A stretch of DNA of 63,570 bases, taken from positions 12,668,368 through 12,731,937 of the forward strand of contig NC_068990.1 in NCBI RefSeq assembly GCF_001194135.2, read 5' to 3'. Under the pieces are notes generated by a model. It saw nothing but the letters and a program-made list of their open reading frames with translations, searched no databases and was not told the origin of the DNA. Made by a program: the position numbers and the translations under genes. The stretch is from Octopus bimaculoides (lineage: Eukaryota). Position 1 is the first letter of the stretch; every line of letters starts with the position of its first letter. Shown in pieces: positions 2,051-62,890 of the stretch.

Positions 2051-3324
2051 GATGTCCCTCAAATCACACTTCACTGCCTTAATATGGAAACACACATTAG
2101 ATACTGCAGTTCTAGATTAACCCCTAAAATGACAGCATTTCCTTTAACTGCAGTGTCTTTAATCCTGGTTGTACTTGACATAGCGCAAAACAACGATAAG
2201 TGCATTACAATATGTTAGTCTATGTTAGAGTTCTGACAATTTGTCAGTATTACCATGTGTTTTTTTTTGTTATTTTTTTCTTTATAGTTTTGCCTTGTGT
2301 AAATGTTTTAAAAAATCCGGAAAGTTTATGTCAAGTTTTTCTAATAAAAATAAACATGAAACTCTTGGATGCTGCCTTTTTACTCTCTTAAATGCAGAAG
2401 TCTCTGATATCCAAGTGGTTAAAGAGTATCAGTTGAAGGGCACCCGGGAATCATGACCTTGCTGTGGCCCGGCCCCTTTGAGTGTGAAAAGTTAAGGACT
2501 GAAACACTTGCCTAAGAGGAGTTTCTTTTTTAACGAGTTTCTGCAGCTCAGCTCACTTGAGAGATTCTTACCAATAAATTAAAATAGAAACTAAAATATG
2601 CGCACATATTCATTTGAGTAGCACATACTATTGAAGGTATGTCATATATTTTTCAATCCAGGCAAAGACCGAGTAAAAATACATTCATATATGAAAGAGC
2701 TTCAACAAGGCAGCTCTCAGCTGCTAGAAATAGCAGCCAACTCACTCTCTGTTATCTTCAAATAGGTAGAGGACATTGGATAATTTAGTCTTCGATACAT
2801 CATACTTGAACAATAAGAAGGGATAGTCACAGCTGGACTGCCTATTAATACAAGTGTTTCCATTCATCCATTTCTTTGTACAAAAAACTGCTACCTTTCA
2901 AAATGTCTTTCCTTCCTATATAGTACACAAACTAAATTAAATTTCATAATACTTGTACCAGTTTAACTCACTAATATACTCAACTACTTCCTGTCAGTTT
3001 ACAAGTGATTTTTTGGACAATACCTCTTCTACTCAGATGCAATCGTGTAAAAAGAAAAGTGTTCTTTTCCATGAATTAATGCAAATATCTGAATTTGCAA
3101 AAATACCTAATTCACTTTAGTAGTCTTTCAAGTGGATTTATTCTTGGCTTTTTAAGCTACAGAACTTCTTATTATTTTGCTACCATTTCTTCTTTTCCTC
3201 TTTTCTGTCTCTCTTTTCTAATGGCATTGTGCCTGGTGAATGCATACAGTTCTTTTATAACATACAAACATAAATTTATTGGTTAACACACTGATTGGCT
3301 GGCAGTATAAGAGATATAACTTGA

Positions 3325-3510
3325 GCTGGTAGAATCATTAGCACAATGGATAAAGTGCTTAGCTGTATTCCTTTTGGCTCTTAATGTTCTCTGTTCAAAA
3401 TCCAGCAAGTCAACTTCACTTTCATTCCTTCAGGGTCAATAACATAAAGTGCCAGGTAAGAATTGGGGATGATGTAATCGACTTCTCCCGTCCCCTAAAA
3501 AGTAGCTGGC
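3325..3510 (+). mobile_element. SINE family B, diverged
   Basis: gagctggtagaatcattagc ... gttcaaaatcc ... ttcattccttcagggtcaataa. Confidence 0.7.
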
Positions 3511-3552
3511 TTTGAACCCATCCTGTAATGGATCAGCATCTGATTCAGGGAT

Positions 3553-3891
3553 GGCTCCAGGTTCAGTCTCACTGCATGGCACCTTGGGCAAGTGCCGTCT
3601 ACTATAGCCTCAGGCCAATCAAAGCCTAGTGAATGAATTTGGTTGACAGAAACTGAAAAAAGCCTGTTGTATGTATGTGTGTGCCTGTGTGTCTTTGTGT
3701 TTGTCCCCCACCACCGTTTGGCAACTAGTGTTGGTTTGTTTATGCCCCTGTAACTTGGCAGTTTGGCAAAAGGTATTGATAAAATAAGTAACAGGCTTTA
3801 AAAAGAAAAAAGTTCTAGGGTTGATTTATTCAACTAAATATTTTTCAAGGCAGTGCTCTAGCATGGCCACAGTCTAAAGACTGAAACAAAT
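3553..3891 (+). mobile_element. SINE family A (CORE-like, internal microsatellite), head truncated
   Basis: B-box ggttcagtctc, CORE-like accttgggcaagtg, internal (TG)n and 3' end gcagtgctctagcatggccacagtc..gactgaaacaa. Confidence 0.8.
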
Positions 3892-5260: not shown

Positions 5261-5708
5261 TGACTCTTTGGTCAGCCTTCTGCCTTATCTCCTATCTCAC
5301 CCACCTGGCCATCACCATTTCAATTGACATGTGTGGCCATGTTTCCCCTCATCGTTCCACTGTCTTCCTCATTGCTCAACTTCTACACAACTCATACCAC
5401 ACCCCATACTATTCACACCCCTTCATACACTGGCTTTCCCCTCAACCTCCCACACATCACTTGAAATCTCTTCTCTACATGCCATTTTTTATTTTATCCA
5501 GCTTCCATTTCTTTCTGCTTTCTCTGCAGAAGAAAGTAATTCAACAACGCGGGTTGATGAACCGTAAGACGTGTGGCCAGAACCTCCTGGAAAATAACCA
5601 TAGCGAGGGACATTCCACAGTTGAATTAGAACAGTCACAAACAGTGAAAAAAGACATGCACCCAACACCAGAGCTGAAGACACCTCCGAAAGGAGGGGCC
5701 CCGCCACG

Positions 5709-5824
5709 TCAAAACAGTAGAGGAGTAGGTGCCGAAACCGGACGTGGTTCCTCCTGATGATGTCTTGAGCTAACTGGATCCTATAAAGGATCTGTTGTGG
5801 TAGCAGACCACGAAACATGGTTGA
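5709..5824 (+). ncRNA. Candidate full-size type III hammerhead ribozyme, family H4
   Basis: GTA cut triplet 5717-5719; stem I 5720-5726/5747-5753; canonical CTGATGA 5754-5760 plus extra T; long imperfect stem II 5762-5811; GAAAC 5812-5816 pairing back to GT 5717-5718; bulged stem III out to 5709/5824. Folded by eye only. Confidence 0.45.
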
Positions 5825-5904
5825 AATTCCTCCCTCCAGCATCCAAAATGTTAGATCTTATCATCTTCCTCATGATATAAAGTACCAAGTACACTCTATA
5901 AATT

Positions 5905-6046
5905 GATTGGCATTAGGAAGGGCATCCAACTGTAGAAACCAAGCCATAACAGACTATGGAACCTGCTGTGGTCCTTGGCTTTGCCAGTTCTTGTCAAACC
6001 GTCCAACCCATGCCAGCATGGAAAGCAGACGTTAAATGATGATGAT
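5905..6046 (+). mobile_element. SINE family E 3' region
   Basis: ggcattaggaagggcatccaactgtagaaacc ... ccaacccatgccagcatggaaagcagacgttaaatgatgatgat. Confidence 0.8.
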
Positions 6047-6824
6047 CAGTTATTACTTTTTGCCAATACAGAACATCACTAGTTTCCTCAGTTCTTCTGT
6101 TTTAATATAAACACTGTAGCTTCTCTTGAGAGGGCATTTAAATTCATTAATTTATAAATATAGTTATTTATTTACTGACAGTAGTAATGTTTTGATCAGA
6201 TGAAAATATAGATTAGGCTATATCACTTCTTCAATCACTAATTTCTTTTGAAATAGTAATATCCCTTGTGTGTCTTATTGCATTTACTTCTCTATGAAAA
6301 CTCTAAAGAGTTGATAGAAAATCATTAATCATAATTCTTAAACATAACAACTATTAGAGTTAAGTTAATAAAATTAACATTGTTAATAAAAGAGCCATTA
6401 AAGAACTAATTAAAAAATAACTGCAGTAACAAAAAATTTTAAATTATAAACAAAAAATTAGTCAATGACTAATACTAAAAATTAGTTAATGACTAATACT
6501 ATTTTCATTTTTTCAGCAAGTACAGGAGATGTCATAGGACATGTTTCAATCGTATTGTGACCTCACCAGCATAACGTATATTATATTTACAACTGCCAAA
6601 TGGCTGTTACAACTCCATCACTTTACAGCATCATGTTTCTGCTAAAACAAAATACCAATTTAGTCAATGGTTTTACTTTAGCTATATTGTTCTTTTTCTG
6701 TGTTAATTTTAACAGCAAATATTCATCTTGATGTAGTAATGTGTTACATTTTCCAGAAATTTGTCTGTAAATGATTTTTTTTTATTGAATTTAATGACTA
6801 ATTTTTTGTTCTTTTATTTTTCAG

Positions 6825-7032
6825 CTGTTTATGATATCGGTGCTGTTGCACCAGATACGTACTGTGGCTATACAATACGAGGTGAAAACAAACCTACTGG
6901 ATACATAGTATCACCGACATACCCTGGCATTTATCCAGACAACTTATTTTGCTACTATAAGCTACAAGGGAAACCAAAACAACGGATTAGATTAAAATTT
7001 GAAGATTTCTCACTATTTCATGGTGGAGAGTA
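6825..7032 (+). CDS. Sol1: Internal coding exon: N-terminal half of a CUB domain of a SOL-1-like (suppressor of lurcher 1) protein
   Basis: Polypyrimidine tract with tttcAG acceptor at 6823-6824 and GTGAGT donor at 7033. Encodes VYDIGAVAPDTYCGYTIRGENKPTGYIVSPTYPGIYPDNLFCYYKLQGKPKQRIRLKFEDFSLFHGGE plus TA (CUB hallmarks C..G.I.SP.YP..YP.N..C). The Sol1 call rests on recalled similarity to insect Sol1 and needs BLAST; the CUB exon itself is more certain than the gene name. Confidence 0.85.
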
Positions 7033-11575: not shown

Positions 11576-12332
11576 TAATTTGAGGGAGATTCAGCTTCTA
11601 TTTCTAGCATGCTGAAAAATTTGTAAAGACTTTTTGATGGCACAATATTCAATATTAAGTTGTTTGGTTGTAAAAGCATATACTTTTTGTTTATAACATC
11701 ATATAACATTGGTTACATATTCTGAGAGGAACAAATTATTCCAGGAACTAAGTTTTTACCCTACAAGGCATATAACTGCAGTTAAATGCCAACGTGAGCA
11801 GAATTAACAGATATATATTTACAGGCGCATGATGACATACTCAAATCTAAAAACCATTTCTTTGGTGACACTGCAATAGTCTTAATAATAATAATAACCA
11901 ATATAAATTGCCTGACAGTTTCATATTACACCATTTAGCTATAACATACCATAATTCAAATTCTTATCAGTTAGATTATGGATATGCCAAGAATTCTAAA
12001 TTTTCAGATTTCTTCTTGATTTGCTGTATATTCACTATCCAATAAGAATATCTATTATATTTATCTACCATTGAGAATTGTAAATATGGCCGCCAGAGAA
12101 TAGAAACACGCACACACAAAAAAAGAAAATGCACTCATAAAAAAATGAAAATTCCATTAGTATAGATCATTTTTTTTTTGGACCATTAATTTTTTTATTT
12201 TTTATTTTTTTTGTTATTTGCTAACATTGAACATGACATTTTGAATAATTATCTTCAGGTGACCTAGAATATACTACAGTTGGGTTTGAATTCAGAACTC
12301 TGTTTTTAATGTAAAGTTTCAAGTAGGATACA

Positions 12333-12715: not shown

Positions 12716-14144
12716 TAATATGGTGATAAAAATATAACAGATAGAGCTAGTAGTTTAGAAGACCTGGGAAAGCAGAGCAATCGAATTCATTGTGTCTGAA
12801 TTGCAAGGATACACACACCGTAGATACTCACCTCTACATTGAGCTGTGCTGAATAGATAAAACACACACCTTTCCTTTGACAAGATATAACTCTGCTGCA
12901 TGTAGCTTTGCCAGTTCCACAGTGTTGCTGTTGTTCTGGTTGATGGTGGTGTCTTCGTGGCAAAACATCCTTTACTAAGCAGATCTAGGACCAGTACCAT
13001 TCTAGTTAGAGTATGTCTTTTACGTCATATTTTCAAGATGATAGGAAGTGATTTGTGAGGATTTGGTTGGTATTTCTAGCAGAATTAGTGAGCCCATATT
13101 TTTTGTTGACTTGCTATGAAGCCATTAGGATTTCGCTGAGATTTCATTATAGATAACTAATTAATCACCAAACTGTAAGAACCAAATATTCTTTTTCTAA
13201 AAAGGAAAAAAAAAAAAAAAATCATGAAAATGCCAGCTATATTTCCTGTTTCACATAACAGTAAACAGTTGCCAAGGAACTAAATCTTTATCTATAAACT
13301 AACCTTAAGATTATTGTTTTTGTTCTGTTCAACAGCATCTATATTCTTTATATATTCTGTAGATCTTTGATTTATAAAAGATAAGAAAGCTAGACACTTT
13401 TTATCAATACTCACTTTGTATAGTGCTTGAAGCTTAAGTTTTCTTAAGAAAATCATTCTGTTTAGAATTAAACTTAATACAAGATCTTCTGTGATGTTGA
13501 ATTCCTTTATAGAAATGAAGGTGCAAAATAACATGTTATGGCATTTGCGGCTGTTTTGTGGTTATCTGTGGGTGTAGATTTACTGAAATCGATAGCTGGG
13601 AATTAATACTTAACCATGGAGTTGACTTGTGTAGGTGTAATCGCTGCCCTCGTGGTTACTTACTAAGCTAAGCTCTTCACTCTCTATGGAGCATAGGTCA
13701 TCAACAACTTTCCTTTTCTGTTCTCGACTCTGAACTGTCATTTTCTCTCCCAGGTCTTCTTGGTTTTGAGTTATCATCAATAGTTCTGTAACTTTCTGTT
13801 TTTATTATCAGATTAATCCTCCCTAAGTACAGCAATATATCTTTCAACACACGATTTCGCATGAAGAATCTTGTGAAACAAATACAAATATGAAATATTG
13901 TATGCTTCAGCCAAGTTAGCAATAAACTGAGAAATACTATCACATTGTCTCTTCATAAAGAACTGCACCTTCTTCAATCTATACACAAATTCTATCAATT
14001 CAACAGGACAGCTCAACCTCTCAAATTATCAAGTTAAGAATATACAGTGTTATCTGTCAAGTCCAAGTGAGACTGTAGTCATGGCCAATGCCAGTGTCTT
14101 GCAACTGGTACCCATGCTGTTACATGTAAGAAGCAACCACTCAT

Positions 14145-14325
14145 GGAGTGGTTGGTGTTAGGAAGGGCATCCAGCTGTAGAAAACATGACAAAAATCAGA
14201 TTGAAACCTGATGCAGCTTCCCAGCTTACCAGGTCTCAGTCAAACTGCCCAACCCATGCTAGCATGGAAAACAGTTGTTTGATGACGACGATGATGATAA
14301 CAATGATGATGATGATGATGATTTC
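14145..14325 (+). mobile_element. SINE family E 3' region with (GAT)n tail
   Basis: gagtggttggtgttaggaagggcatccagctgtag ... aacccatgctagcatggaaaac. Confidence 0.8.
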
Positions 14326-28048: not shown

Positions 28049-29534
28049 TCTCGAAATTAATCATTCTGAAGTTTGTATGTCACAGTTGCAATACTCTTTT
28101 TATGCATTAGAACGTGCAAACTTATAATGTGCATCTTACACAGTGCACATCCATCTTATTAAGGATTCTCTCTGATGTTGCCATATCAATGTTGTTGACT
28201 GAATGTTATTTATCATATTCTTTGCCCTGATCTAATTAGTTATTCCGTAGACACACAGACACACACTATACAAATATAAGCCCTAAGTCACAGAAGGATC
28301 CTTTACATGGTTACTCATTCAACTAGAAATAGCAGCAAAGTTGCCATCAAATCAGATCTTCCTTTCTTGGAAAGAGAAATGCAAAATTAAAATTGATAAT
28401 GCTGTCTGAAATACATTGTCTGAATAAAAGGTGACTGTCATGGTTGGAATACCTTTCATCCCAGTCTGTTTGACCAGGACTGATTTAGTTCTAATCTGCA
28501 ATACTACAATACCCAAACAAATGTTCATCCACACACATATCTACACAATGACTTTTATGGTAACCTCTTTCAATTACTGCCCCTTCCCAGTAAAGATTAC
28601 ATCTTCCTACCTCTGTAGCTTCACACCCTTTATTTACTTAGTTCTTTAATTTTCCACTTACAATAGCTGACTTAATGCACCACCTTGCTGGACACCATCA
28701 TTGAGTGACTTTAACAGTTGCAAGCATTCAAGCCAGGTCTCTAGTCTTAGAGTAACTTCCTTCCTTCTTTCCTTCTCCCTTCTTTCTTTTTTCTTTCCTT
28801 CCTTTCTTCCTCCCTCCCTTCTCATAGGGATAATCTTCCTCTGATATATTAACTGTCTTGAGCTTATATACCCAATTTTGGTTTCCATGGATTTTAAGCT
28901 ATTACGGTACAAGACTGCATCCTCAACCTGAGAATGAAATACCAGTTAAGCCCTCCCCACTCAAACCACAGCTATCAGTTATGTCACAAATCCTGGGATT
29001 CATAAGGCCTGAGGTTAACCTGGTTTTCATGATGTATAAGTGACTAATATTACAACACTCTCAACTTCCTACCTATTGTTGGAACTTATTTTAAAGTTGA
29101 GTGAAATAACATGTTTTGTTCGAGACCGTGATCATCTGCCCTGTTCAGTGGAGTGGATAGAAGCAACAGGAAATGAAGTGCTTTGTTCAAGGACCCAACA
29201 TACCACCCAGTCCAAGAATTGATCTTGCAACCTAATGGTTGTGACCTCAACACCTGAACTTCTACACCACATACTCTCACTCTTCTCAACCATGAGAAAA
29301 AATATGGCTTCAACCTGCTTTAGTAATTGGCTGTCCAGTAAAAAACAAATTCATTTATGTTACTCTTCAATTGTTTCTCTTACTATGATGAGAAATTATT
29401 ATCTATACTCAGAATATTTTCAATTAATTAAATTGATATCTCTCGCCAGTCCAATATGATATAAGAAAAGGAATGGAAGATTATATTTTTCATTACACTT
29501 TGCTGTTGACATAATCTTTTATTCTTTGTTGATC

Positions 29535-39750: not shown

Positions 39751-39836
39751 GGAGTCTGGTGTAGCCATCTGGTTTCACCAGTCCTCAGTCAAATTGTCCA
39801 ACCCATGCTAGCATGGAAAGTGGACATTAAACGATG

Positions 39837-39838
<2 letters not shown>
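39751..39838 (+). mobile_element. 5'-truncated family E tail inserted inside an (ATT)n tract
   Basis: (ATT)n lies on both sides of ggagtctggtgtagcc ... gacattaaacgatg. Confidence 0.8.
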
Positions 39839-39876
<38 letters not shown>

Positions 39877-41461
39877 GTATCATTGTTATATTTTAAAAAC
39901 GATTAACGTAACTCTTCACAAAGGTAAACAGTCAAGACGAAGAGCGCGATTCGATTGTAAGATCTTTTATTAGTTGAACGATATTTCAACAGTACGTCTG
40001 TCTTTGTCAAGTTCAAAATAAGAAGTGATAAAAATTCAAAATTATAGAATTTTAAACGTATAGTATGAACAAGAGCAAGCAGTGTCCACACGTTGATGGA
40101 ATGACGTCATCAGTTTTTAAGTTACAATTTTATAACAGGCGAAAAGAAAAAGACAGAAAAAAATAGAAAAATGAAGACGACAGAATAAAAAGGAAAGAAA
40201 AAGAGGGAAAGAAGAATATTTGATTAAATATTCTTCTTTCTACATGTTCACTAAGTATATTAGGTGAAGAAGTGGCATAATCATTAGAGCATTAGAAAAA
40301 CCTACTATGTCATATTTGTTCTCAGTTTTTATGTTCTGAGTTCAAATCCTGCCTAGATCAGCTTTCCCTTCTATTCTTTCAAGAACTGATAAAATAATGT
40401 ACTAAAGTTCCCGTCAAATGCTGGGATCAATGGTAATTTCCTTGAAATTACTGGTCTTGTGCCTAAATTAGAAACCCTTATTTTTTTCTAAAAAAAACCA
40501 AAAAAACAACAAAAAGCATGGCTTGTTAGACATTTTGACCAGCCACTTGTCATAAAATATGAAAGCTTCAGAAAACACTGACAGCAGAACATGTGCCAAC
40601 TGGGCTGCCCACACATCAAAGTGCCCCGTGAATAAATAATAAGTTAATATTAATCAGTAGAGTGTCAGAGAAGACATCTTATCGTTTTTAAACACATTGT
40701 TATAGGGTCAAAAAAGTAAGTGCCACTCAAGAAATGGAGGCCAATTTTAAATCAACTATATATGTGCTGCTGCAATTTGTGCTTATGCTAGAAGACAATT
40801 TTGTGATCATTTTTGTCATTGTATTGTGAAAAGCAATATATCTCTTGATTCATTCATGAACGCCACTTAACATTTCCTCCAAACTATAAATTAGTCTACT
40901 TTTGAAATGATCAAGAATAAAATATTGCAGTAGAAGAAAACAGGAAAAAAAAAAAAAAAAAAGACAGAAACTTACTGTTTCCAGTATTCTTTATGTTATA
41001 TATTTCTCTATCTCACTCTCACTATCTCTATCTCTCTCATTCCCCTCTCTCCCCCTCTCTCCTGCAATAAAAAATATGATAATCAGTATCTTCTAAGACT
41101 AAAGTATGCATTAACCTTACTGCCATCATTATCATCATCTTCATCATCATCACCAACATCGTCATTATTCTTGCTGTTAGAGCACCGGTTCGTCAGAGTT
41201 GTTAGAGTGTTGGACAAAAAGGCTTATAGTAGGTCTTTACTTATGGTACTTTCTGAGTTCAAATCCCAGAGACCTGATAAGGTACTCAAAACCCACAGTT
41301 GCTATGAATTTTTTGCAGTGTTCTTCAATATATGATATCTATAAAAATACACCTTCATATTGAGTGCAGCAAAGTCTCCACTGATTGGCTGGGGTCAATT
41401 TGCTCGACTAAAGGTGGTGCTCCAGCATGGCCACAGTCAAATGACTGAAACAACAAAAAGA

Positions 41462-42983: not shown

Positions 42984-44285
42984 CATACACACACATATGT
43001 TTATATGTGTGCGTGTATATATATATGTATATGCATATATATTAATATGTGTGTTCATGTGTATGTATTATGCATGTTTATATGAATATATATATATGTA
43101 TGTATATATATATATATACATACATACACACACATATGTTTATATATGTGTGTATATCTATATATGTATGTTTATATGAATATATATTTATGTGTGTATG
43201 TATAAATATATATATATGTATATGTACATATATATCTAATATATATATTCATATATGTATGTATGTATATATGTATATATAATATATACATATATATAGA
43301 TTTATTGATTTATGTATGTATGTATTTATGTATGTATATGCCTGCATGTATATATTCACGGAGAAATGATAACAAGTGCACCTAGTTTATTACTATTATT
43401 TTTTTTCCAGAAACATGGCTCCATTGGCCATGATTGTTACACATTAACTGTCATATTATTCAAATTCATTGTCTTTGAACTAGAACTGCTGATAGGGACT
43501 CTGTCGATCAGGCTGCACAGCTGATGATTCCTATCCTGTAACTGGCTGCATCTAATACTAAATTTGCTGCAACTAATACTAAAGTCTCACTGGCACCAGT
43601 TATGCAATTGCATATAGATATGGGTAGATGCAAGTCACTTGAATATGTAGCTGGTATTCAAGTCTGCTTAGCAATTATTTTGTTGTTTTTCATTGGTTTA
43701 GGCGAAATCCCTCTATATAACTGTTCCCTTTTTTTCAATCACTTACACTGTGATGTCGACTATCATTCAAATGTTTGTATCGCTATCATGGTGAAATTTG
43801 CAGCATAATTCATATCAATGAATTATAGTAAAAGCTGTCAAATGTACCCCAATATAACAGCTCGTCTTTTATAGGTGTTTTCTTGCTAACATTTCTGCAT
43901 AATTACATGCAGTTATTACATCTCTTTCACACACATACACGCACACACACACACACACACACACGTACATAGTAAATGTAATGAACAATGAAAAAAAGAA
44001 GACAACACATTAGGGATAAGATTTTACATATACTGTTTTAACTTATGGCTTAAAAAGAGAATCTGAACATTCCGGACATTTGTTCTTTATCAGAAGGAAG
44101 ACCAAAGTGTAAGAGGAGAAAGGGAAAAAAGATGGTGGGGAAAAATGGGTGTGGTGTTAGAAGCCAGATGGACATGCTGTTCTACAGGAAGAGGAGCTAA
44201 GAGGGGAGGCGGTTCATGTCAGTATATGTATCATCATCCTTTTAGCATCCACTTTTCTATACTTCCAAGTGTCAGCCAGAATTCA

Positions 44286-44316
44286 TCGAGTTCGATTCCA
44301 GGCAGTGACTTGAATC

Positions 44317-44395
<79 letters not shown>

Positions 44396-44570
44396 CATTG
44401 AAAAATACCTTAGGAATGAGAACCCAGGTTCGAAATTTCCCCCAAGACACCTGATGAAGACTGGAGGGTATATCAGCCGAAACGTTGTGTTAACAACAAA
44501 CAAGATGAGGACAAATATCCGTCAAATGTAAATAATGTACATAATACCTCGTCTCTTAAATATAGAACTA
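44286..44570 (+). mobile_element. Hammerhead-bearing SINE family H1, copy 1 (B-box, (AAT)n, hammerhead, tail)
   Basis: B-box AGTTCGATTCC 44289-44299, (AAT)n at about 44318-44390, spacer, hammerhead 44446-44491 and tail with tgtaaataatgtacataat. Colinear with 47925-48163. Confidence 0.8.
44446..44491 (+). ncRNA. Minimal type I hammerhead ribozyme motif (H1)
   Basis: GACAC(44446-50)/GTGTT(44487-91) stem I; canonical CTGATGA 44451-57 plus A; stem II GACTG/CAGCC with one A.C mismatch; GAAA 44479-82; ACGT palindrome; predicted GUU cut after 44486. Confidence 0.75.
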
Positions 44571-44911
44571 GATTTTTCTACTACCTGATACCTTTCCTGT
44601 TGCCAACCTTCACCTGTTTCCAAACAAGGTAATAATCTCCAGGCATAATGAATAACAAAGAGCCCAAACATAGCTACATGAAGGACTGGAACCAAACAAT
44701 ATTGTCTAAAGAAGTTTTTTGATCATGAAGATCATGTAGCATTCAAGAAGCTTGGACATGCTCCTGTGGATGCTTGCAAGCAAAGGTGATACAAAAAAAG
44801 GGACAACAAAACATTCAGGCAGAAGATACAAATAAAATAAGGACGGGTCATTTGGAGTTTTCTTTCCTCAGTCGAGTTCTATATTATCTTTGTAATTTCG
44901 GCTGTTTATAC

Positions 44912-44947
<36 letters not shown>

Positions 44948-45782
44948 GTTGACGATTTGACCTAGGACTGGTGGCTTTTTCCCACTTTCATTTACCAACT
45001 TTATTCATCAGATATTGACCAACTCACAAACTCATAGTTATAGGATAGAATGCCAGCCAACAGCATTCATAAATTGGAACTGAACCCTCCATCATGTTTT
45101 TCAGAAGCAGACTTCCTACACAGTCACACATATGCATGTGTATATGCATTTATGTATGGTATTATAGTTAAGTGCTTTGAATTTCTATATTAGAAATTGA
45201 AATGATGGGTTTGTATATAGGAATAGCGCAGCTGAAGACAATCATTGACCAAACCAATAAAAACATTAGGCAGAACTTCAAAACAGCAGACATTAATAAA
45301 TCACCTTATGGCTGCATATAGGAACTGAACACTGTCTTATGTTTAATTCAACATTTATCTTCAGTTTCCACTCTCTAACATCCTAAAACCTATTTAAATT
45401 TTATTGAATTTATGAGCTTCTGTAAATCTTCGTGTATAAAGTATGTATGAAATAAATTGTGACATTGTATTTGCATATCTGTTTATAATACTGTTTGTGG
45501 TAGTATTTAGCAAATGTTTGTATATGTGAATCACTTTTTTGTCTTTCATAGAGATTATAACAAATTATTTTAGTGTTCTGTTTTAAGTATATTTCTGAAG
45601 ATTAGAATTATTTTAAAACTTGCTATTTCATCTCCTAGAGGATAGCATTCAAAAGCATGTAGATGCACATCTTGATCACTTGATCAGAATAAACAGAAAC
45701 TGTTTATAACATCTGAAAATCCATGAAGATAAATCTGCATTTGGTTACAGTTGGTAAAAATAAAAACATAGGACTTAAGAAA

Positions 45783-46145
45783 TGCCTGTGTGATAAGAAG
45801 CTTGCTTTATAATGGTATGAATTCAGGTTCAGTCCCACTGCATGACACCTTGGGCAAGTGACTTCTACTATAGCTCTGGACAGACCAAAGCCTTGTGAAT
45901 AGATTTGGTAGATGGAAACTGAAAGAATCCCATCATACATATATATATATGTGTATATTTATATGTGTGTGTCCCTACTTGACAACAGTTGTTGATTTCT
46001 TTACATCTCTGTAACTTAACAGTTTGGCAAAGAGAGACCAATAGAATAAGTATCAGGCTTGAAAAATAAGTACTGAGTCGATTTGTTTCAGTAAACCCTT
46101 CAAGGCGATGCTCCAGCTTAGCCACAGTCCAATGATAGAAACGAA
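45783..46145 (+). mobile_element. SINE family A
   Basis: ggttcagtcccactgcatgacaccttgggcaagtgacttc (CORE-like) through the 3' end. Confidence 0.8.
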
Positions 46146-47924
46146 AGACAAAGTTAGTTATTGTGATGCTGATTGTTATTGACTAAGTACAAAGCTACAT
46201 TTGTGAGGCAGAAACAGTAAAAGCTAATGAAATTAGTTGTATTGTATTACTGGTATCTGTTTGTCAAACTAAAAAAATGTAAGGGAAAAATGTTGGAAGG
46301 TTACAAATAACTATGCCTTGCGTTTTGAAAAGGAAGCCATCAGTACTCTGTTACAAATTAGCAACCAGCGTAGATAAAGCAGTAACTGTTTTCTTCTTTA
46401 ACATTTTTCCTCTCCATCAAGATATTCACAGTTTTCATTCACGATAATTACTTTAAAAAACATAATCTCATCAACTGATATCCAGCATCCCAACTAATGT
46501 TATTAGTAATTTATTATTATTATTTTTTAATTTACTTATTTGAATAAAGTTTTGAAACAATAAGACTAATTAACTCACTCGTTATTCCATAGTTTTAAGC
46601 TGAGGTATTGAAATAAATCGATATTCTGCTTTTCAATTTGCTAATCTTGTCTTCGTAAATTTTGTTTTTCTCTTCTGTTCTGTTCAGTATCCTTTGAATA
46701 GAAAATTGGCCTTATATAAATAAACAGAAAAATGAAATGTGTTTTCAGAATTAGTGGCAAAGGTGTTTTTATTTAGATCCACCACCCCTTCGTTTTATAT
46801 TACATGCATAATAACAATCTACACTTTTTTAGATGTGGATGCTAGTTTCATTTTAGTGCTCTGAGCTTTAATCCTATAACTAACTCATTAAGTTAATTTT
46901 AAAGCTAGACTTTATGGAATCTAACTATTTCTCTTGCCAATTGCATTTGATTGCAGATTCTGTGCTTCAGAATTGAGCATCTTTGAAGCTGGTCTTTATT
47001 GACAACATAAAGATAGCTCTTTGGAGATTTAAATATTGATTGGCCTACTCTATGTTGTATGTTCATAAACAATTAGCAATGATTAGTAGCATATAAGTTT
47101 GTGTGGCATTGTTTTAAATAGACCTTCTTTAAAAAGATTTATTGAATTACACCATTGAAGAATTTCCTAGTGATAGAGTTCAGATAACCATTTTTGAAAC
47201 ATGTTTAGCATTATATTCACTTCTGTTTTACTCTCTGATAGTGTTATATATGATAAGGTGTCACAAAATGTTCGGCTGCATTTATTAAATTGTTGTAGCT
47301 GACTATGATAAAGAGACGTTTTAGCTGATCCATTTAACGATGTTTTCCTGTTATTAAAATAAACAGAAGAATGATGAGGCTTTGCAAGTACTCTTTTAAA
47401 CAACATTTATTAAATTGTTGTAAAACAAATGCGCTAAGTAGAAGTTTTAGGTAATCTATTTAGATTTATATCAAATTGCATATATGTTGTTAAAATGAGT
47501 TAAAATGGATGAGATCCTTAAGACAAGCACATAGAAAAAGCTAAAATAATTTATATAAATTTTGTTGAATGTTTCAAATTTATGTATGTTTACATTTGTA
47601 CAAGGCAGATAGAAATGAACCTACAGCTGTTATTGTGTTAAGTTAACGAAAGAGATAAACAAATGATGTTTAAACTTCAATTAAACTTGTAACAACTTGA
47701 GAATGAATATGTATACTTCACAGCATGTAGGGTTGTCTTTAATATCTGTGTGTGTGTGTATGCGTGTGAGAGAGAGAGAGAGAGAAAAAAGTTAGTGTAT
47801 GTGCTTGTAGTCGCTATATGATTGGAACTACATGGATATATTTAATGTCTTTATGTTCTTTAATTATATACATTTTTATGTCCACATATATACATATACA
47901 TATATTACATATGAGTTGGAGAGG

Positions 47925-48163
47925 GACATATGGTGTAGTGGTTAAGAGTGCAGGCTACTAACCCCAAGATTCCAAGTTCAATTCCAGGCAGTGACCTGAG
48001 TAGTAGTAATAATAATAATAATAATATCGAAAAATACCTTAGGAATGAGAACCCAGGCTCGAAATTTCCCCAAGACACTTGATGAAGGCTGGAAGGTATA
48101 TCAACTGAAACATTGTGTTAACAACAAACAAGATGAGGACAAATATCCGTCAAATATAAATAA
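47925..48163 (+). mobile_element. Hammerhead-bearing SINE family H1, copy 2, with complete tRNA-like head
   Basis: A-box TGGTGTAGTGG 47931-47941 and B-box AGTTCAATTCC 47975-47985 at tRNA-like spacing, short (AAT)n, degenerate hammerhead 48074-48119 (TTGATGA core, ACAT instead of ACGT) and the same tail. Confidence 0.8.
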
Positions 48164-48768
48164 TGGACTTATAGGTTTGATATTGTAATATATGCCACCT
48201 TAAAATCTGGGCATTTAAAATGCTCAGGTTGTGTAGAATCTTGGGCATCTTAAATCTGTTGGAAGTAATCCCTCCTTCGGTATGAAGGATAGATTAGATC
48301 TTCAGAGAGAGACGAAGTGAGAGAGGCAGGGAGAGAGACAGAGACAGAAAAAGAAGAATCACTTTCAGGACTTTTATATTCATCGTATTGATCTCAAAAC
48401 GATGGAAAGCAAAGCTGACCTTGAAGGAATTGGTACTTGAATGGTAGGGAGCCCGAACGACTACCACAACATTTTTTATCCAACACCCTAATGAATCTGT
48501 GAATCAAGCTGCACAAACACCTCTCACATACACACATATACACACATGCACATATACACACACAAATACATGCATGCACACATACACACACGCACACACT
48601 GAGGCATTGACATAGGTGTAGATATGTAGCGGAAAAGCTTACTTTCCAACCATGTGATTTTATGTCCAGTTCCTCTACACAGCACCTTGAGCAAGTGATT
48701 TCTACTATAGCCCAGGGTTGATCAATCCTTGTGACTGGATGTAATATACTGAAAATGAAAGAAGTCCG

Positions 48769-48805
<37 letters not shown>

Positions 48806-49898
48806 GACACTTTTTTTACAATCATCATATAAGTGATATTGTATGGTGAAAAGCATGTTTGGATTTAGCAAAATATTACATTATTTATAATCAGGCCAGG
48901 CTGGCAACAAAAAAAAAAGGGCTTCCTACCATAAAAAATCTACCCAATGAATTCTGCTTGACCTATGGAAGTTTGGAAAAGTGGATGCTAAAGGGCTGAT
49001 GATGATATATGATACAGACAGATAACAGAGTAATAGATGTGTATGTATACATCTGCATATGTGTGTGTGTGTGTATTTCAACCATTTACACAGCAGCCAG
49101 CATTCCTTTTAATTTCTCCTATCTCTAATATGCTTCCTTCTTTCTCCAACATGTCTGTACTTCTCCCTCATCTGCCATTTCCTCTCCTTCTTCTCCTCTC
49201 ATTAATCCCACTTTATATATCCATCAACACTAGTTGACATTTCTTCTCTCTCTCCAAGGAAGTGGTTTGTCCTAATCATTAGACATTTCTTCTTCCTTGA
49301 GGTGTAAAACTTATTCCAGTGTTTGAATTATTCAAATCAGTTGTTGCATTTAGGAAAATTACACATGCATAGAGAAGACTTTTAGCATTTAGGCTCATTA
49401 ATATTTGTAAATTCTTTGTATCCTGGCCATGTAAAATGCATGATCAATTTTACAAAAACAGAAGGCATTCTTAATGACACAATCATTGAAAGTTTTAGAC
49501 TTTATTTATAGCAAAACAGTACCTGGCTGAATGAAACTGCTGACTTGAATTGTTTGGTGTTACAATTGCATTTGCATCTAGAATGCATTTTAAAAATACT
49601 ATTCAAGCATAATACTTGACTGGTATTTTATTTTACTGACCCCCAGGAATACAAAATGCAAAGTTCATTTTGGTGGAATTTGAAGTCAAAACATGACAGT
49701 TTATCTTAATTGTGATCTCCAAAATATAATCCGGTTTTATTCTTAGTTTTTTATGCGTGTTATACCTAACTCAAAAACAACTTATGTCTTGTACTTAGCA
49801 TTTTGCCAAACAGAGAGTGCTAAAATAAATGCCAGATTTAAAAAATAAGTAGTACTAAACTCTTTAAGACAATGTTATAGTCCAGTGACTGAACCCAA

Positions 49899-50388
49899 TA
49901 ATAACAAGAGCACTCAGAGAGTGCAAACCTCCACCAAGGCAACACTGTCATCTCAACGATTAGCCAAAGATGATTTTTAAAATGAGAATATCTGACATTA
50001 TTTACATTATTTACAATTGATGGATATTTGTCCTCATCTTGTTTGTTGTTAGCACAACGTTTCGGCTGATATACCCTCCAGCCTTCATCAATATCTTGGG
50101 GAAATCTGAAATAAACTTGACTGCTCCCACAAACGAGAATACTAAAAGTGAACCTGACCACTCTCAAAAATTAAGTCAAAAAAAAACAGGAAAAATAATC
50201 GAGAATCCTTGTCCAGGACTGGATCAATCCCAAAATATAATCAGTTTGTGCCAGTCATGACGCCAGACATCTCTGAAAGTTTCAGCTGAATCCATCCAGC
50301 AGTTCTTGAGATATCTTGTCCATGAACAAACAAGCAAAAAACGTGACTGTAAACAATAACTTCACCTTCGCTAAGGTGGAGATAATAA
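49899..50388 (-). mobile_element. Non-autonomous Helentron-type (HINE/DINE-like) element
   Basis: Terminal hairpin GCACTC-AGA-GAGTGC 49910-49924 beside the subterminal repeat CCTCCACC 49928-49935. The opposite end has the stem-loop CTTCACCTT-CGCT-AAGGTGGAG 50360-50381 carrying the complementary subTIR. A/T-rich flanks and no TSD. Confidence 0.7.
49996..50103 (-). mobile_element. Family H1 copy 3: 5'-truncated hammerhead plus tail, with a 6-bp TSD
   Basis: ATCTGA at 49990-49995 and 50104-50109 flanks 108 bp that match H1 from just upstream of the hammerhead to the (TGTAAATAA)n tail. Stem II GGCTG/CAGCC and GAAACGTT are intact; C3 and stem I are degraded. Confidence 0.85.
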
Positions 50389-58234: not shown

Positions 58235-58374
58235 AAGAGTAGTCTTTTGAATATACTTCAAAAAGTTCTAGTTTGCTCATTTCTGAAGTTTGAAAATAAA
58301 AAATTTAAAGATTACTTCTTAAAATTAGCTTAATTAAATCCATGTACTCATTTTGTCTAAATTTTCTCTTTCAG

Positions 58375-58622
58375 TTGTCCGTTTGACTACGTCAAAATAT
58401 ATGACGGGTATAGTAAAGAGGATCCTGTCATTGGAGTATTCTGTGGACATTACAAGAACTTGACATTATTCTCTTCAAAGGAAGCACTTTATATTGAATT
58501 TAAAACTAGAAGTGGACGAGTCAGTTTTGACCACCATGCATTTGATGCAAATGCTGATTTTAAGTTTGAACGAAGAGGTTTCAATATCACTTATGAATTT
58601 AGTAAACGTTTCGTTAATCTAA
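58375..58622 (+). CDS. Sol1: Internal coding exon: C-terminal half of the same CUB domain, SOL-1-like
   Basis: Polypyrimidine tract with ttcAG acceptor at 58373-58374 and GTAAGT donor at 58623. An open frame of 82 codons encodes CPFDYVKIYDGYSKEDPVIGVFCGHYKNLTLFSSKEALYIEFKTRSGRVSFDHHAFDANADFKFERRGFNITYEFSKRFVNL (CUB motifs C..DY..IYDG, G.FCG, RGF...Y). It is absent from the ORF track because it lacks a start codon. Confidence 0.88.
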
Positions 58623-59871
58623 GTAAGTAAACTTTATATTTTCAATTGATTTGCTTGTATTTCTTTCAGTTCTTCTTTGCTTATCTCTTTCATCATTTTT
58701 CTTTAATGTATTTTGTAAACGACAATTTTATTCATAATATTGCATCAGATGTACAGTAACTTTGAGTTGACCAATGCCTTGTGAGCGACATTTGGTGAAG
58801 ATGGCTGTGCAGAACCCACCTTCATTCTTACTTGCTAAAACTTTTGTCGTACCTAAGTTTCTTTTAGATATCTTGATTCAAGTTTTTACTTCTAAATTAA
58901 GAATCACTTCACAAATAATTCTGAGACAGATTCAGCTAAGCAAACTATATCATTGGCATACTGAAGTCCCTATGGACAACCAGTCTTAAACTCTATTGTC
59001 ATAGTCTTAAGAATTATAATCTATGGGATGATACTGAGAACTGAGTCCTAATAGAAATCTCCCTGCTTGCTGGTTGATAACTCTCAACTTACCAACAACT
59101 ACTTTGTTAGAGAGAAATATCAAGGAAGAATTGGAAGAAGTATTGAGATTTGATCTGATGAGACTAAACCTGATAAAGGGGTAACAAGGGACTGTAACAT
59201 TTAGTTGGATGAACTGCTTTTAAAATCCATTCATCTATATTTAATTTCCATACAACCATCAAACTACAAAATATGATACCTTATTGTTGAAGTCAATGAA
59301 TGCTAGCTAGAGTGGTTTACTTTTTACTAGGGACTACTCTTATAATTCTTGCTACACTTTTGTATTTGGCTTGCAAGATTCTTGACATGAATTCATGTGT
59401 TGAAACAAATTTTGTTGTGTCTTGGGAAAGTTGCGATGAAAGAATTATGACTACAAACAAACAGGTGATCAATTGCTTAACCATCATATTAATCAAACAA
59501 TCAGTTAATTAATTAGTTAGATATTTAACCAATTTACTAACAATAATGAAGTAAACCCGAACCTGTGCATGTGTTAGTCCTGTATTTGTCTCACTGAAAG
59601 ATGACATCAGTATTACTCCATTCAAGGACACACTTTCGTTATCATTTTGGTTAATTTTCCTCCTAATTAACAATATTATAGCATTTCCTGTTACATTCAG
59701 TAGTTGCTAATTATTTTCATTTTTCACTATTTACTCATATGCTGGAGTTTCATTGACTTGCACGTTCCAAGGTCTTTTCATTTTCTGATTTAACTATTTT
59801 CTTATATCCATAATTTACAATTTGTTCATAAATTTTATTAACATGCAGCACTGTCTCTCTTTAAGACATAA

Positions 59872-61750: not shown

Positions 61751-62399
61751 ATTTCACACAAGCATAAATGTAGACATCAGTTAAACTGCTGAAAATAATA
61801 ACAGAGATGAATCTATGATTTTGTTTCCTAACCTCTCGACAATCACTGGAAAAGACAAAGTTTGTATAAAGGAAGTACAAAATTAATAATTTAGTCAAGC
61901 GCATAGAAAAATAGGTTATTGAATCAAGCAATAGTTTGTAGCACTGACTCCCACAGTTTCACTGCAAGCCTCCTCTTCTTCCCTACTCCTCATCTACCTT
62001 TCACCTTTAATTTATTCATTGAAACCATCGTTGAATGAACCTTTAGTATATTTGTGGTGCTAATACATCAGACCAAAAGGAAATGAAACCTATTTAAAAG
62101 TTTACAAAGATTTAAGATAGTCAGAGCATATCAAAACAAATTTAATTCATAAGAAGGTAGAAACTGAAGGAGAGAAAAAAAGAGAGGAGGAAGTTTTAAA
62201 CTGGAACACCCTAAATATACTGAATCATGAAAGAAGCATTGCACACATACTAAATAGAAACTGGTTTATTAACAGACTGCCATAGCATTGATTGAAGAGT
62301 GCTAATTAAGAAGCCGTTCTTACTTTCCTAATGATAAAAGGTCATTTCCTGAAACATGTTTGATGTCACATGGTGTCATGTGATGACGGAGTGTTTTGA

Positions 62400-62890
62400 A
62401 TCCAAAAAGATGAATCCAGTATCTCACGTGACCACTGCCAGGCATCTCTGTACATTGAATGCACCAAACGATTGATGAAGCCCACACTGTTAAAACTTGC
62501 TGTGAGTTGTGTTGCAGTTGTCGGCCTTGAACAGATGTCATTTAGCCTTCTTTGGATTTTGTCTGACTGATGCTCTGTGAGGTCCAAGTCCTGACTGAAG
62601 GCACGCCATGGCAGTGTCTGAATGTTGTGCTGTTGGAAGAAGTCTGTTGTCAATCTGGCAGTATGGGCATGGGCGTTGTCATGTTGGAACACGTGATTCC
62701 AATGACGGGCAAAGTATGAATTTTGTGTATGTGCATTGTTTGTTTTTAATTTTGTCAACTACACAGTATAGTAGGGTCAGTTGGGCACTGTCTGTGAGAA
62801 AAAGAGCATAATGACACAATTCACTCTGCCAGAAATTTGGAAACCACATGCTGTTTTGCTTGGCATTCATGCCAGAGGCTCCAGTATAAA
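62400..62890 (-). pseudogene. Tc1-family DDE transposase pseudogene (C-terminal catalytic region)
   Basis: VFQHDNAHAHTARLTTDFFQQHNIQTLPWRAFSQDLDLTEH matches Tc1 FQQDNAxxH..WPxxSPDLNPIE, with a frameshifted GHVRY terminus. Confidence 0.9.

Follow-up and report, generated by a model that had tools for sequence, protein, structure and literature searches.

Can a short interspersed nuclear element (SINE) with a transfer RNA (tRNA)-derived promoter carry a hammerhead ribozyme, and by what machinery would such an element be copied? The question arises in a 63,570-nucleotide stretch of the Octopus bimaculoides genome (RefSeq assembly GCF_001194135.2, contig NC_068990.1, positions 12,668,368 to 12,731,937 of the forward strand; this whole stretch is referred to as the window), in which an earlier note had described a repeat family, H1, with an RNA polymerase III (Pol III) head, an (AAT)n stretch and a type I hammerhead. 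We consider it reasonably probable that H1 is a composite, non-autonomous octopod SINE, consisting of a Pol III head, a linker and a hammerhead module, and that it spreads by the mechanism proposed below.

Using the longest copy, c2, as a blastn query, we found exactly three members of H1 in the window. The identity to c2 is 91% over 169 nt for c1 and 90% over 102 nt for c3, and a 26-mer directly 3' of the hammerhead motif is identical in all three copies (chance expectation 0). The copies and their parts are as follows.

47924-48165, plus strand: copy c2, full length (242 nt), the blastn reference, with tRNA-like head, microsatellite linker, body, hammerhead motif and short tail.
47931-47941, plus strand: A box of c2, TGGTGTAGTGG, which fits TRGYNNANNNG.
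47976-47985, plus strand: B box of c2, GTTCAATTCC, pattern GTTCRANNCC.
48000-48026, plus strand: linker of c2, (AGT)2(AAT)6, read from the sequence; Tandem Repeats Finder (TRF) reports TAA x6.7 at 48007-48026.
48074-48119, plus strand: hammerhead motif of c2, decayed, located by a relaxed descriptor and by alignment; nominal cut after 48114.
~44287-44568, plus strand: copy c1, found by blastn to c2, 5'-truncated within the head, without A box, nested in a repeat of another family, X.
44290-44299, plus strand: B box of c1, GTTCGATTCC, by pattern match.
44313-44392, plus strand: linker of c1, (AAT)26.7, by TRF.
44446-44491, plus strand: hammerhead motif of c1 with all core nucleotides, located by the relaxed descriptor; nominal cut after 44486, between GUU and G.
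44525-44545, plus strand: 9-nt tail repeats AATGTAAAT of c1, x2.3, by TRF.
44546-44568, plus strand: 3' extension of c1, ACCTCGTCTCTTAAATATAGAAC, which occurs once in the window; c2 and c3 are without extension.
49996-50103, minus strand: copy c3, found by blastn, 5'-truncated to the hammerhead motif and the tail, with 2.3 nine-mer repeats.
50051-50096, minus strand: hammerhead motif of c3, with C3>U, located by alignment.

Much of the anatomy in the earlier note is confirmed. The third copy that it placed at 49996 is c3, and TRF finds both the (AAT)n linker and the tail repeats, the nine-mer AATGTAAAT being present 2.3 times in each of c1 and c3 and 1.3 to 2.3 times across copies. The claim of two colinear copies with a head containing A and B boxes stands for c2, the only copy with both; c1 has a B box alone, and the apparent head upstream of it was rejected, as it belongs to the minus-strand family X repeat. 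The copies lie singly, 1.8-3.6 kb apart, and all three are dead insertions, roughly 10% diverged.

H1 is not confined to the window. With the frame +1 peptide of H1 as query, a word-indexed protein search returned a single match, an O. bimaculoides UniRef entry (P0001, 86% identical); the reverse-frame peptide spanning hammerhead to head had no match in this search, and in an exact 22-mer scan no JGI metagenome contig matched. When a profile of the frame +1 translations was compared with 1.84 billion representatives, we obtained 96 clusters, which fall into two groups. Group A contains ~27 H1-like clusters, made up of Logan contigs of 1-2.5 kb (SRR118693xx) and O. bimaculoides database entries; one of these contigs, L001, has other repeats in common with the window. 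Group B is a sister family, which we call MANG after the first residues of its peptide.

We compared the DNA of ten further octopod copies. The full H1 head is present in contig L010 and in the minus-strand copy of L008, and a partial one in the plus-strand copy of L008 and in L005; L007 has a different tRNA-like head and L011 has none. The bodies of L001 and L012 have neither head nor (AAT)n and start precisely at their 5' boundary, GAAAAATACC. Since the body starts at a boundary of its own and is preceded by varied 5' parts, it is a module in its own right, to which different 5' modules have been joined. The link between head and hammerhead on which the earlier note built is nevertheless the common arrangement: a tRNA-like head with an AT- or A-rich linker stands upstream in seven of the ten copies in which the 5' end of the body is present (c1, c2, L005, L007, both copies of L008, and L010). 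The 3' extension, 22-25 nt long and following the nine-mers, is found again in P0001, in both arms of L001, in L005 and in L012, and is therefore family sequence carried by some copies only. In L001 (715-1007, SRR11869385) and L012 (600-872, SRR11869391) the body abuts an inverted module that is truncated inside the CUGAUGA box. The inverted/direct junction is identical at these two different loci, and the hairpin-like composite may itself be an amplified subfamily.

The protein databases hold a further trace of the family. In XP_052825882.1 (P0007), a 94-residue O. bimaculoides sequence annotated as 'dystrobrevin beta isoform X1', the residues GEGWRVYQPKCCVNNKQDEDKYPS correspond to the hammerhead module in frame +1, either as an exonised H1 fragment or as an annotation artefact. 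At least one O. bimaculoides RefSeq model thus has a peptide read from the H1 repeat, which is of relevance to annotation.

The family X repeat around c1 and a short duplication around c3 record how H1 inserted.

44225-44286, minus strand: family X sequence on the left of c1, foreign to H1, from an alignment with the X copy at 48880-49020 (plus strand); the repeat as a whole reaches left to 44180.
44569-44640, minus strand: right part of the same repeat, from alignment and by eye (TAGATTTTT...GTTGCCA...CCTG).
49990-49995: ATCTGA, target-site duplication on the 3' side of c3, abutting the element end.
50104-50109: ATCTGA, target-site duplication on the 5' side of c3, abutting the element end.

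Homology to family X stops at GAATTCAT (44279-44286) and restarts at TAGATTTTT (44569). As X resumes on both sides of c1, the head fragment, (AAT)n, body, hammerhead, tail and 23-nt extension moved as one insertion. Copy c3 is truncated just 5' of helix I; its duplication is 6 bp at most, and the first bases could be residual element homology. Nothing clear in the way of a target-site duplication was seen for c2, in a repeat search, or for L010. The element is short (242 nt), non-coding and dispersed, with three copies per 63.5 kb in the window in addition to the ~27 clusters elsewhere. The nesting of c1, the truncation and duplication of c3, and the start of c2 at tRNA position +1 support H1 as a SINE-like retroposon that is mobile as a single unit and contains a hammerhead module, as the earlier note had held.

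The position of the 5' end is well defined. Copy c2 starts 7 nt before the A box, which corresponds to tRNA position +1, and its 5' end, GGACATATG, is common to the independent full copy L010, the flanks of which differ. Copy c2, L010 and the minus-strand copy of L008 each start at +1 and have their A and B boxes spaced as in a tRNA. From the start of the A box to the end of the B box c2 measures 54 nt, the span found in two other tRNA-type SINE heads of the window. In the window as a whole the combined A and B box pattern has 6 matches against 0.58 expected, and GTTCRANNCC alone has 12 against 1.66. Aligned with the SINE heads at 29269 and 27692 (both on the minus strand), the H1 head shows 71% mean column identity.

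Two more SINE families, at 29285-29000 and 27705-27500 (minus strand), have heads homologous to that of H1 and unrelated bodies. Such sharing of heads by unrelated bodies indicates that heads are shuffled among octopus SINE families.

The hammerhead is most complete in the consensus, GACAC-CUGAUGA-A-GGCUG-(GAGGGUAUAU, 10-nt loop)-CAGCC-GAAA-CG-UU-GUGUU. Derived from 16 copies, it has lost no core nucleotide and retains both helices, I and II, as well as the ACGU palindrome and the unpaired A, in agreement with the first reading of the motif. The core boxes C3-U4-G5-A6-N7-G8-A9, G12-A13-A14, A15.1-U16.1 and H17 are complete in the consensus and in c1. Helix II of the consensus (GGCUG/CAGCC, plus a G.U pair) is closed by G10.1-C11.1, and helix I (GACAC/GUGUU) has open ends. 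The unpaired A after CUGAUGA and the later GAA-ACGU-U are present in both the H1 consensus and MANG. Judged by its sequence, the consensus has all parts of a minimal type I hammerhead of the Penelope type. It is without a helix III hairpin, and only a second molecule could offer the A15.1-C-G-U16.1 palindrome a partner for pairing. Helices I and II are both present when the consensus monomer is folded to minimum free energy.

A strict descriptor, consisting of a 5-bp helix I, a 5-bp helix II closed by G10.1-C11.1, both core boxes and UH, fits the consensus and has 0 matches in 20 Mb of composition-matched random sequence, searched on both strands. None of the individual copies in the window passes it. 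The relaxed descriptor finds c1, c2 and one chance-like site in the window, where 0.8 are expected; the extra site, at 46474 on the minus strand (TTGATGA...GAAA, with a 10-nt 'helix III'), is unrepeated and was set aside as noise. In no individual copy of the window is the hammerhead intact, as each of the three carries at least one lesion. In c1 this is a single A10.2/C11.2 mismatch in stem II, which leaves it 1 mismatch from the consensus 41-mer. Copy c2 has C3>U, two changes in stem II (G.U plus a C/A mismatch) and ACAU instead of ACGU; most of its lesions are CpG decay, the changes in CAACTGAAACA being CpG>TpG/CpA. In c3, C3>U is accompanied by a weaker helix I.

A 5-bp hairpin, GUUGU-GUUA-ACAAC, can form directly 3' of the nominal cut (44487-44500, 48115-48128 and the equivalent in c3). 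In the minimum-free-energy folds of c1 and c3 it is in competition with helix I. From these folds, it could be a recognition hairpin for the reverse transcriptase, or a switch that holds the monomer inactive.

The sister family MANG has thousands of copies, which account for most of the 2428 open reading frames (ORFs) found at E<=0.01 by a profile search whose query mixed H1-like and MANG peptides. They come from the ENA assembly ERZ21867824 and from NCBI GCA_052426985.1. The following loci were read as DNA.

L003, 5700-6390: MANG.
L004: MANG.
L014, 9389-10381: MANG.
L015, 9617-10470: MANG.

The MANG head is tRNA-like, with A box TAGCGTAACGG and B box GGTTCAATCCT, and is followed by a linker of ~130 nt. 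Its hammerhead reads ACAC CUGAAGA A GGCCG-(GAGGACAUAU)-CGGCC GAAA CG UU GUGG, and the identity to H1 is 81% over 80 nt. The hammerhead units stand head-to-tail, two or three in a row with a 129-nt period; between them they show 92-98% identity, and in several the core is intact. Next to the array there is often an inverted copy, and inverted, direct and tandem arrangements are combined in L003, L004 and L015. Judging from these sequences, MANG looks young and is possibly active. Copy c1 is colinear with one MANG unit and the first part of the following one; the aligned stretch opens 12 nt 5' of helix I and closes with the extension of c1, which is homologous to the MANG inter-unit linker (shuffle fraction 0.014). 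Terminal redundancy of H1, between its 3' extension and its leader, is not significant when compared directly and appears only through this colinearity.

The MANG contigs also contain fragments that resemble mariner/Tc1 transposases and the C-terminal part of a LINE (long interspersed nuclear element) ORF (...KYLDLARELKKIWNMKVTIVPIVIGALGT...), at 11949-12278 (minus), 13525-14184 (minus) and 5682-6248 (plus) in L014 and at 3223-3588 (minus) in L015.

We propose that H1 works as follows. Its 5' module is a degenerate tRNA-derived Pol III promoter, akin to the heads of other octopus SINE families, and its linker a variable (AAT)n or A-rich stretch. The 3' module, ~140-170 nt long, is equivalent to one unit of a hammerhead-bearing repeat, with, in order, a short leader, the minimal hammerhead, a conserved 30-nt A-rich stretch, the nine-mers and the optional extension of 22-25 nt. 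Pol III would start at the head and read through the sense strand, which, up to the flank, is free of T4 runs and so of a T4 terminator, as a SINE transcribed by Pol III should be. A reverse transcriptase would then recognise the 3' module, and target-primed reverse transcription would give rise to 5' truncations and short target-site duplications. The monomeric RNA would be half a ribozyme that cannot form helix III alone, and would survive, cleavage presumably being restricted to dimers. The ribozyme of H1 is probably attenuated or vestigial, or may serve as a structural handle rather than for a required cleavage step.

For the partner, several lines point to a Penelope-like element. Tandem or inverted complex insertions, 5' truncation and short terminal extensions (30-40 bp) are the insertion signature of these elements (PMC8557442; PMC8969392), and minimal, dimer-dependent hammerheads are a hallmark of them (PMC4209133; PMC6765202). 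The tandem and inverted arrangements are present in relatives of H1 and absent from the window copies. Animal retrozymes are, on one published proposal, non-autonomous derivatives of Penelope (bioRxiv 10.64898/2026.07.22.740005), and octopus genomes contain recently active Penelope families, of which 30 are listed, along with ~900 unclassified SINE families (PMC13282606). Taken together, the insertion architecture, the minimal hammerhead, the retrozyme proposal and the active octopus families make a Penelope-type reverse transcriptase the most likely partner, and mobilisation by such an enzyme is plausible, if unproven. The capture of a Penelope pLTR as 3' module, which the earlier note inferred, is likewise unproven.

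More tentatively, and on balance doubtfully, an undescribed SINE superfamily, with a Penelope-type minimal hammerhead as its central domain, may include both H1 and MANG. Its members would in effect be Pol III-driven 'retrozymes', with interchangeable tRNA heads from which one or several hammerhead units are transcribed, to be copied by a Penelope-like reverse transcriptase. If so, SINEs, retrozymes and the pseudo-long terminal repeats (pLTRs) of Penelope elements would be joined in one continuum; in octopods the family would be old and in decay, and at least one further animal genome would carry it in a young, tandem form with intact ribozymes.

Several results weigh against the proposed mechanism, some of them concerning the partner and the head, others the ribozyme. 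A Penelope ORF or pLTR was found neither in the window, by ORF listing and motif scan, nor in the 53 kb of MANG loci L003, L014 and L015. The window contains no tandem H1 copies, so that H1 lacks there the head-to-tail hammerhead copies by which retrozymes are recognised. For the head, ARAGORN predicts no tRNA, the Rfam tRNA model has no match at E<=10 on 91 nt, and by eye the acceptor and anticodon stems are unpaired. The nine-mer 3' repeats, the target-site duplication and the 5' truncation would equally fit a LINE of the CR1/L2 type.

H1 might accordingly be an ordinary LINE-mobilised tRNA-SINE, with a tail that mimics a stringent-type LINE (CR1/L2) and a hammerhead-like stretch that is a passenger central domain. 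We think this unlikely. It would account for the variation of the 3'-terminal nine-mers (1.3 to 2.3), for the 6-bp duplication and 5' truncation of c3, for the stable GUUGU-GUUA-ACAAC hairpin just 3' of the nominal cut, and for the continued spread of lineages with C3>U; the active octopus LINEs are CR1, RTE, Dong-R4 and L1-Tx1 (PMC13282606), and conserved central domains of unknown function are familiar from SINE superfamilies (PMC4824008). It fits poorly with a conserved domain that is a complete minimal hammerhead with Penelope-type hallmarks. Nor does it fit relatives in head-to-head inverted and head-to-tail tandem arrangement, a pattern characteristic of Penelope-like elements but not of SINEs driven by LINEs (PMC8557442). 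If the partner were a LINE after all, hammerhead modules would travel outside the Penelope system.

As to the ribozyme, the Rfam hammerhead models, like the tRNA model, gave no match, at gathering score or at E<=10, to the window, to 6 kb of it, to two 91-nt pieces or to L003; for the hammerhead, the missing helix III hairpin may be the cause of this silence. Covariation of the stems, by which the earlier note had proposed to judge them, did not appear among the 16 copies (75.5% of cells paired against 75.1% in shuffles), a comparison of low power on dead, neutrally decaying copies. The only compensatory change, from U-A in H1 to C-G in MANG, is a single event, and in 174 MANG peptide units the two stem sides, followed as W/R versus Q/R codon pairs, vary independently, as would be expected from CpG decay. 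Of the 13 octopod copies, c1 alone has all core nucleotides intact. C3>U is present in 4 of the 11 octopod copies covering the CUGANGA box (c2, c3, L005 and the plus-strand copy of L008), which come from two sources, and L001 has lost the CUGAUGA box. The recurrence of C3>U and the loss in L001 argue that H1 can probably spread without cleavage. Finally, the nearest-neighbour energy of the double hammerhead is -22.7 kcal/mol, compared with -27.2 for two monomers, in a calculation that ignores tertiary contacts.

Taken to its end, this evidence would make the hammerhead likeness fortuitous or a dead relic, in a module that is kept for reverse transcriptase binding or RNA stability and never cleaves. 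The lack of covariation and of an Rfam match agrees with such a view, as do the core mutations in almost all octopod copies and in some apparent subfamilies, and the very weak in vitro activity of Penelope minimal hammerheads, even as dimers (PMC4209133). We find it improbable nonetheless. The descriptor has 0 matches in random sequence amounting to 40 Mb over both strands; H1 and MANG, despite their differing leader, tail and head, both retain in their consensus the core boxes, G10.1-C11.1, the unpaired nucleotide and ACGU; and the young MANG units (92-98% identity) have intact cores and stand in tandem, as a dimeric ribozyme needs. Our reading is that the tandem units of MANG supply the partner needed by a dimeric ribozyme, and that the single unit of octopus H1 is an inherited module, mainly a 3' recognition part, that is catalytically attenuated.

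That H1 is two adjacent separate elements, a short tRNA-SINE ending in (AAT)n and a microsatellite-targeting hammerhead element, is very improbable: Penelope-like elements are indeed biased to insertion into microsatellites (PMC8557442), GAAAAATACC is a genuine module boundary at which the L001 and L012 bodies start, and the linker varies from 6 to 27 AAT units, but in c1 head fragment, (AAT)n and body lie between the halves of one interrupted repeat as a single insertion, the order of head, linker and body recurs in c2, L010 and both L008 copies, and no H1 head without a body is found in the window. The fusion of head and body probably happened once, in an ancestor.

The ribozyme-bearing SINE is real and not unprecedented, the closest precedent being the SM-alpha/Sj-alpha repeats of Schistosoma. 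The analogy drawn in the earlier note is apt: SM-alpha is a SINE-like repeat that combines a Pol III promoter with a hammerhead (Ferbeyre et al. 1998 and Laha et al. 2000, as summarised in PMC6765202 and PMC8490949). These repeats are, like H1, short and non-autonomous, with a tRNA-like Pol III promoter and a type I hammerhead; they are dispersed, as H1 is, and tandem, as are relatives of H1, and in both the ribozyme is thought to process multimeric transcripts. The SM-alpha ribozyme is a canonical, highly active type I hammerhead with loop-loop contacts and a short helix III, whereas that of H1 is minimal, without helix III or loop 3. The hosts belong to different phyla, H1 consists of dispersed monomers with an internal (AAT)n, and the likeness is architectural only.

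The hammerhead itself resembles more closely those of Penelope pLTRs, with which it shares CUGANGA, an unpaired nucleotide before stem II, G10.1-C11.1, GAAA, palindromic positions 15.2-16.2 and the absence of loop 3 (PMC4209133). A helix I of 4-5 bp, many dispersed 5'-truncated copies, and relatives in tandem or inverted arrangement are further points in common. Different from Penelope elements are the tRNA-type Pol III head of H1, the absence of a reverse transcriptase/GIY-YIG ORF or pLTR context in the sequences searched, and a helix II of 5-6 bp rather than the 7-8 bp of the schistosome families.

With the metazoan retrozymes that lack long terminal repeats H1 has in common that they are non-autonomous hammerhead repeats, thought to depend on Penelope (PMC7229834; bioRxiv 10.64898/2026.07.22.740005). 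MANG, with its head-to-tail hammerhead arrays, comes closer to them than H1, which is not tandem in the window, and retrozymes have not been described with tRNA-type Pol III heads. A usual retrozyme unit measures ~170-400 nt, so that the 129-nt period of MANG is shorter.

As a set of families, H1 and its relatives recall the SINE superfamilies (CORE, V, Deu, Ceph and Meta), in which varied heads and tails are combined with one conserved domain in a 'jigsaw' pattern (PMC4824008). The heads of H1, L007 and MANG differ, and their common domain consists of the hammerhead and ~30 nt. This domain differs from those of the known superfamilies in having a recognisable candidate function, a ribozyme fold predicted from its sequence. 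The octopus, squid and mollusc repeat literature, in a survey that did not cover Repbase, Dfam or SINEBase, makes no mention of H1, in line with the earlier note's impression that it was undescribed in cephalopods, and contains no published superfamily with a hammerhead as central domain. From SM-alpha/Sj-alpha H1 differs in its minimal Penelope-type ribozyme, in its modular order of head, microsatellite linker and hammerhead unit, and in being one of a wider set of families with a common hammerhead domain and different heads.

These features bear on open questions of the field, namely the role of minimal hammerheads for Penelope-like elements, the origin of animal retrozymes and the reason why SINEs keep central domains. 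The presence of a Pol III head on single units in octopus and on tandem units in MANG would amount to a natural experiment. H1 and MANG separate the promoter from the module recognised by the reverse transcriptase, and they provide monomer and tandem versions of one ribozyme, while with the hammerhead a SINE core domain gains a concrete candidate function.

The window around the three copies is AT-rich (~33% GC), with many microsatellites and interspersed runs of N. Two ORFs on the plus strand, 6740-7030 and 58361-58627, match positions 1-48 and 53-100 of the Pfam CUB-domain profile, and look like two exons of one CUB domain split by a ~51-kb intron. All three H1 copies would therefore lie within this intron, two in sense and one in antisense orientation.

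By eye, an ORF at 62369-62758 on the minus strand (...HDNAHAHTARLTTDFFQQHNIQTLPWRAFSQDLDLTEH...) resembles the C-terminal part of a Tc1/mariner transposase, and Pfam has no match to it at E<=0.01. Another tRNA-type SINE (...GGTTCAGTCCCACTGCATGACACCTTGGGCAAGTG...), without hammerhead motif, is found at 45790-45925 and 48620-48745 on the plus strand and at 39290-39130 and ~61735-61600 on the minus strand, usually next to a (TG)n or (TA)n microsatellite. Family X, which c1 interrupts, has the signature ...GGAAAAGTGGATGCTAAAGG followed by a (GAT)n tail, and an abundant related repeat (CATGCTAGCATGGAAAGTGGAC...(GAT/TAT)n) is present at 39760-39880.

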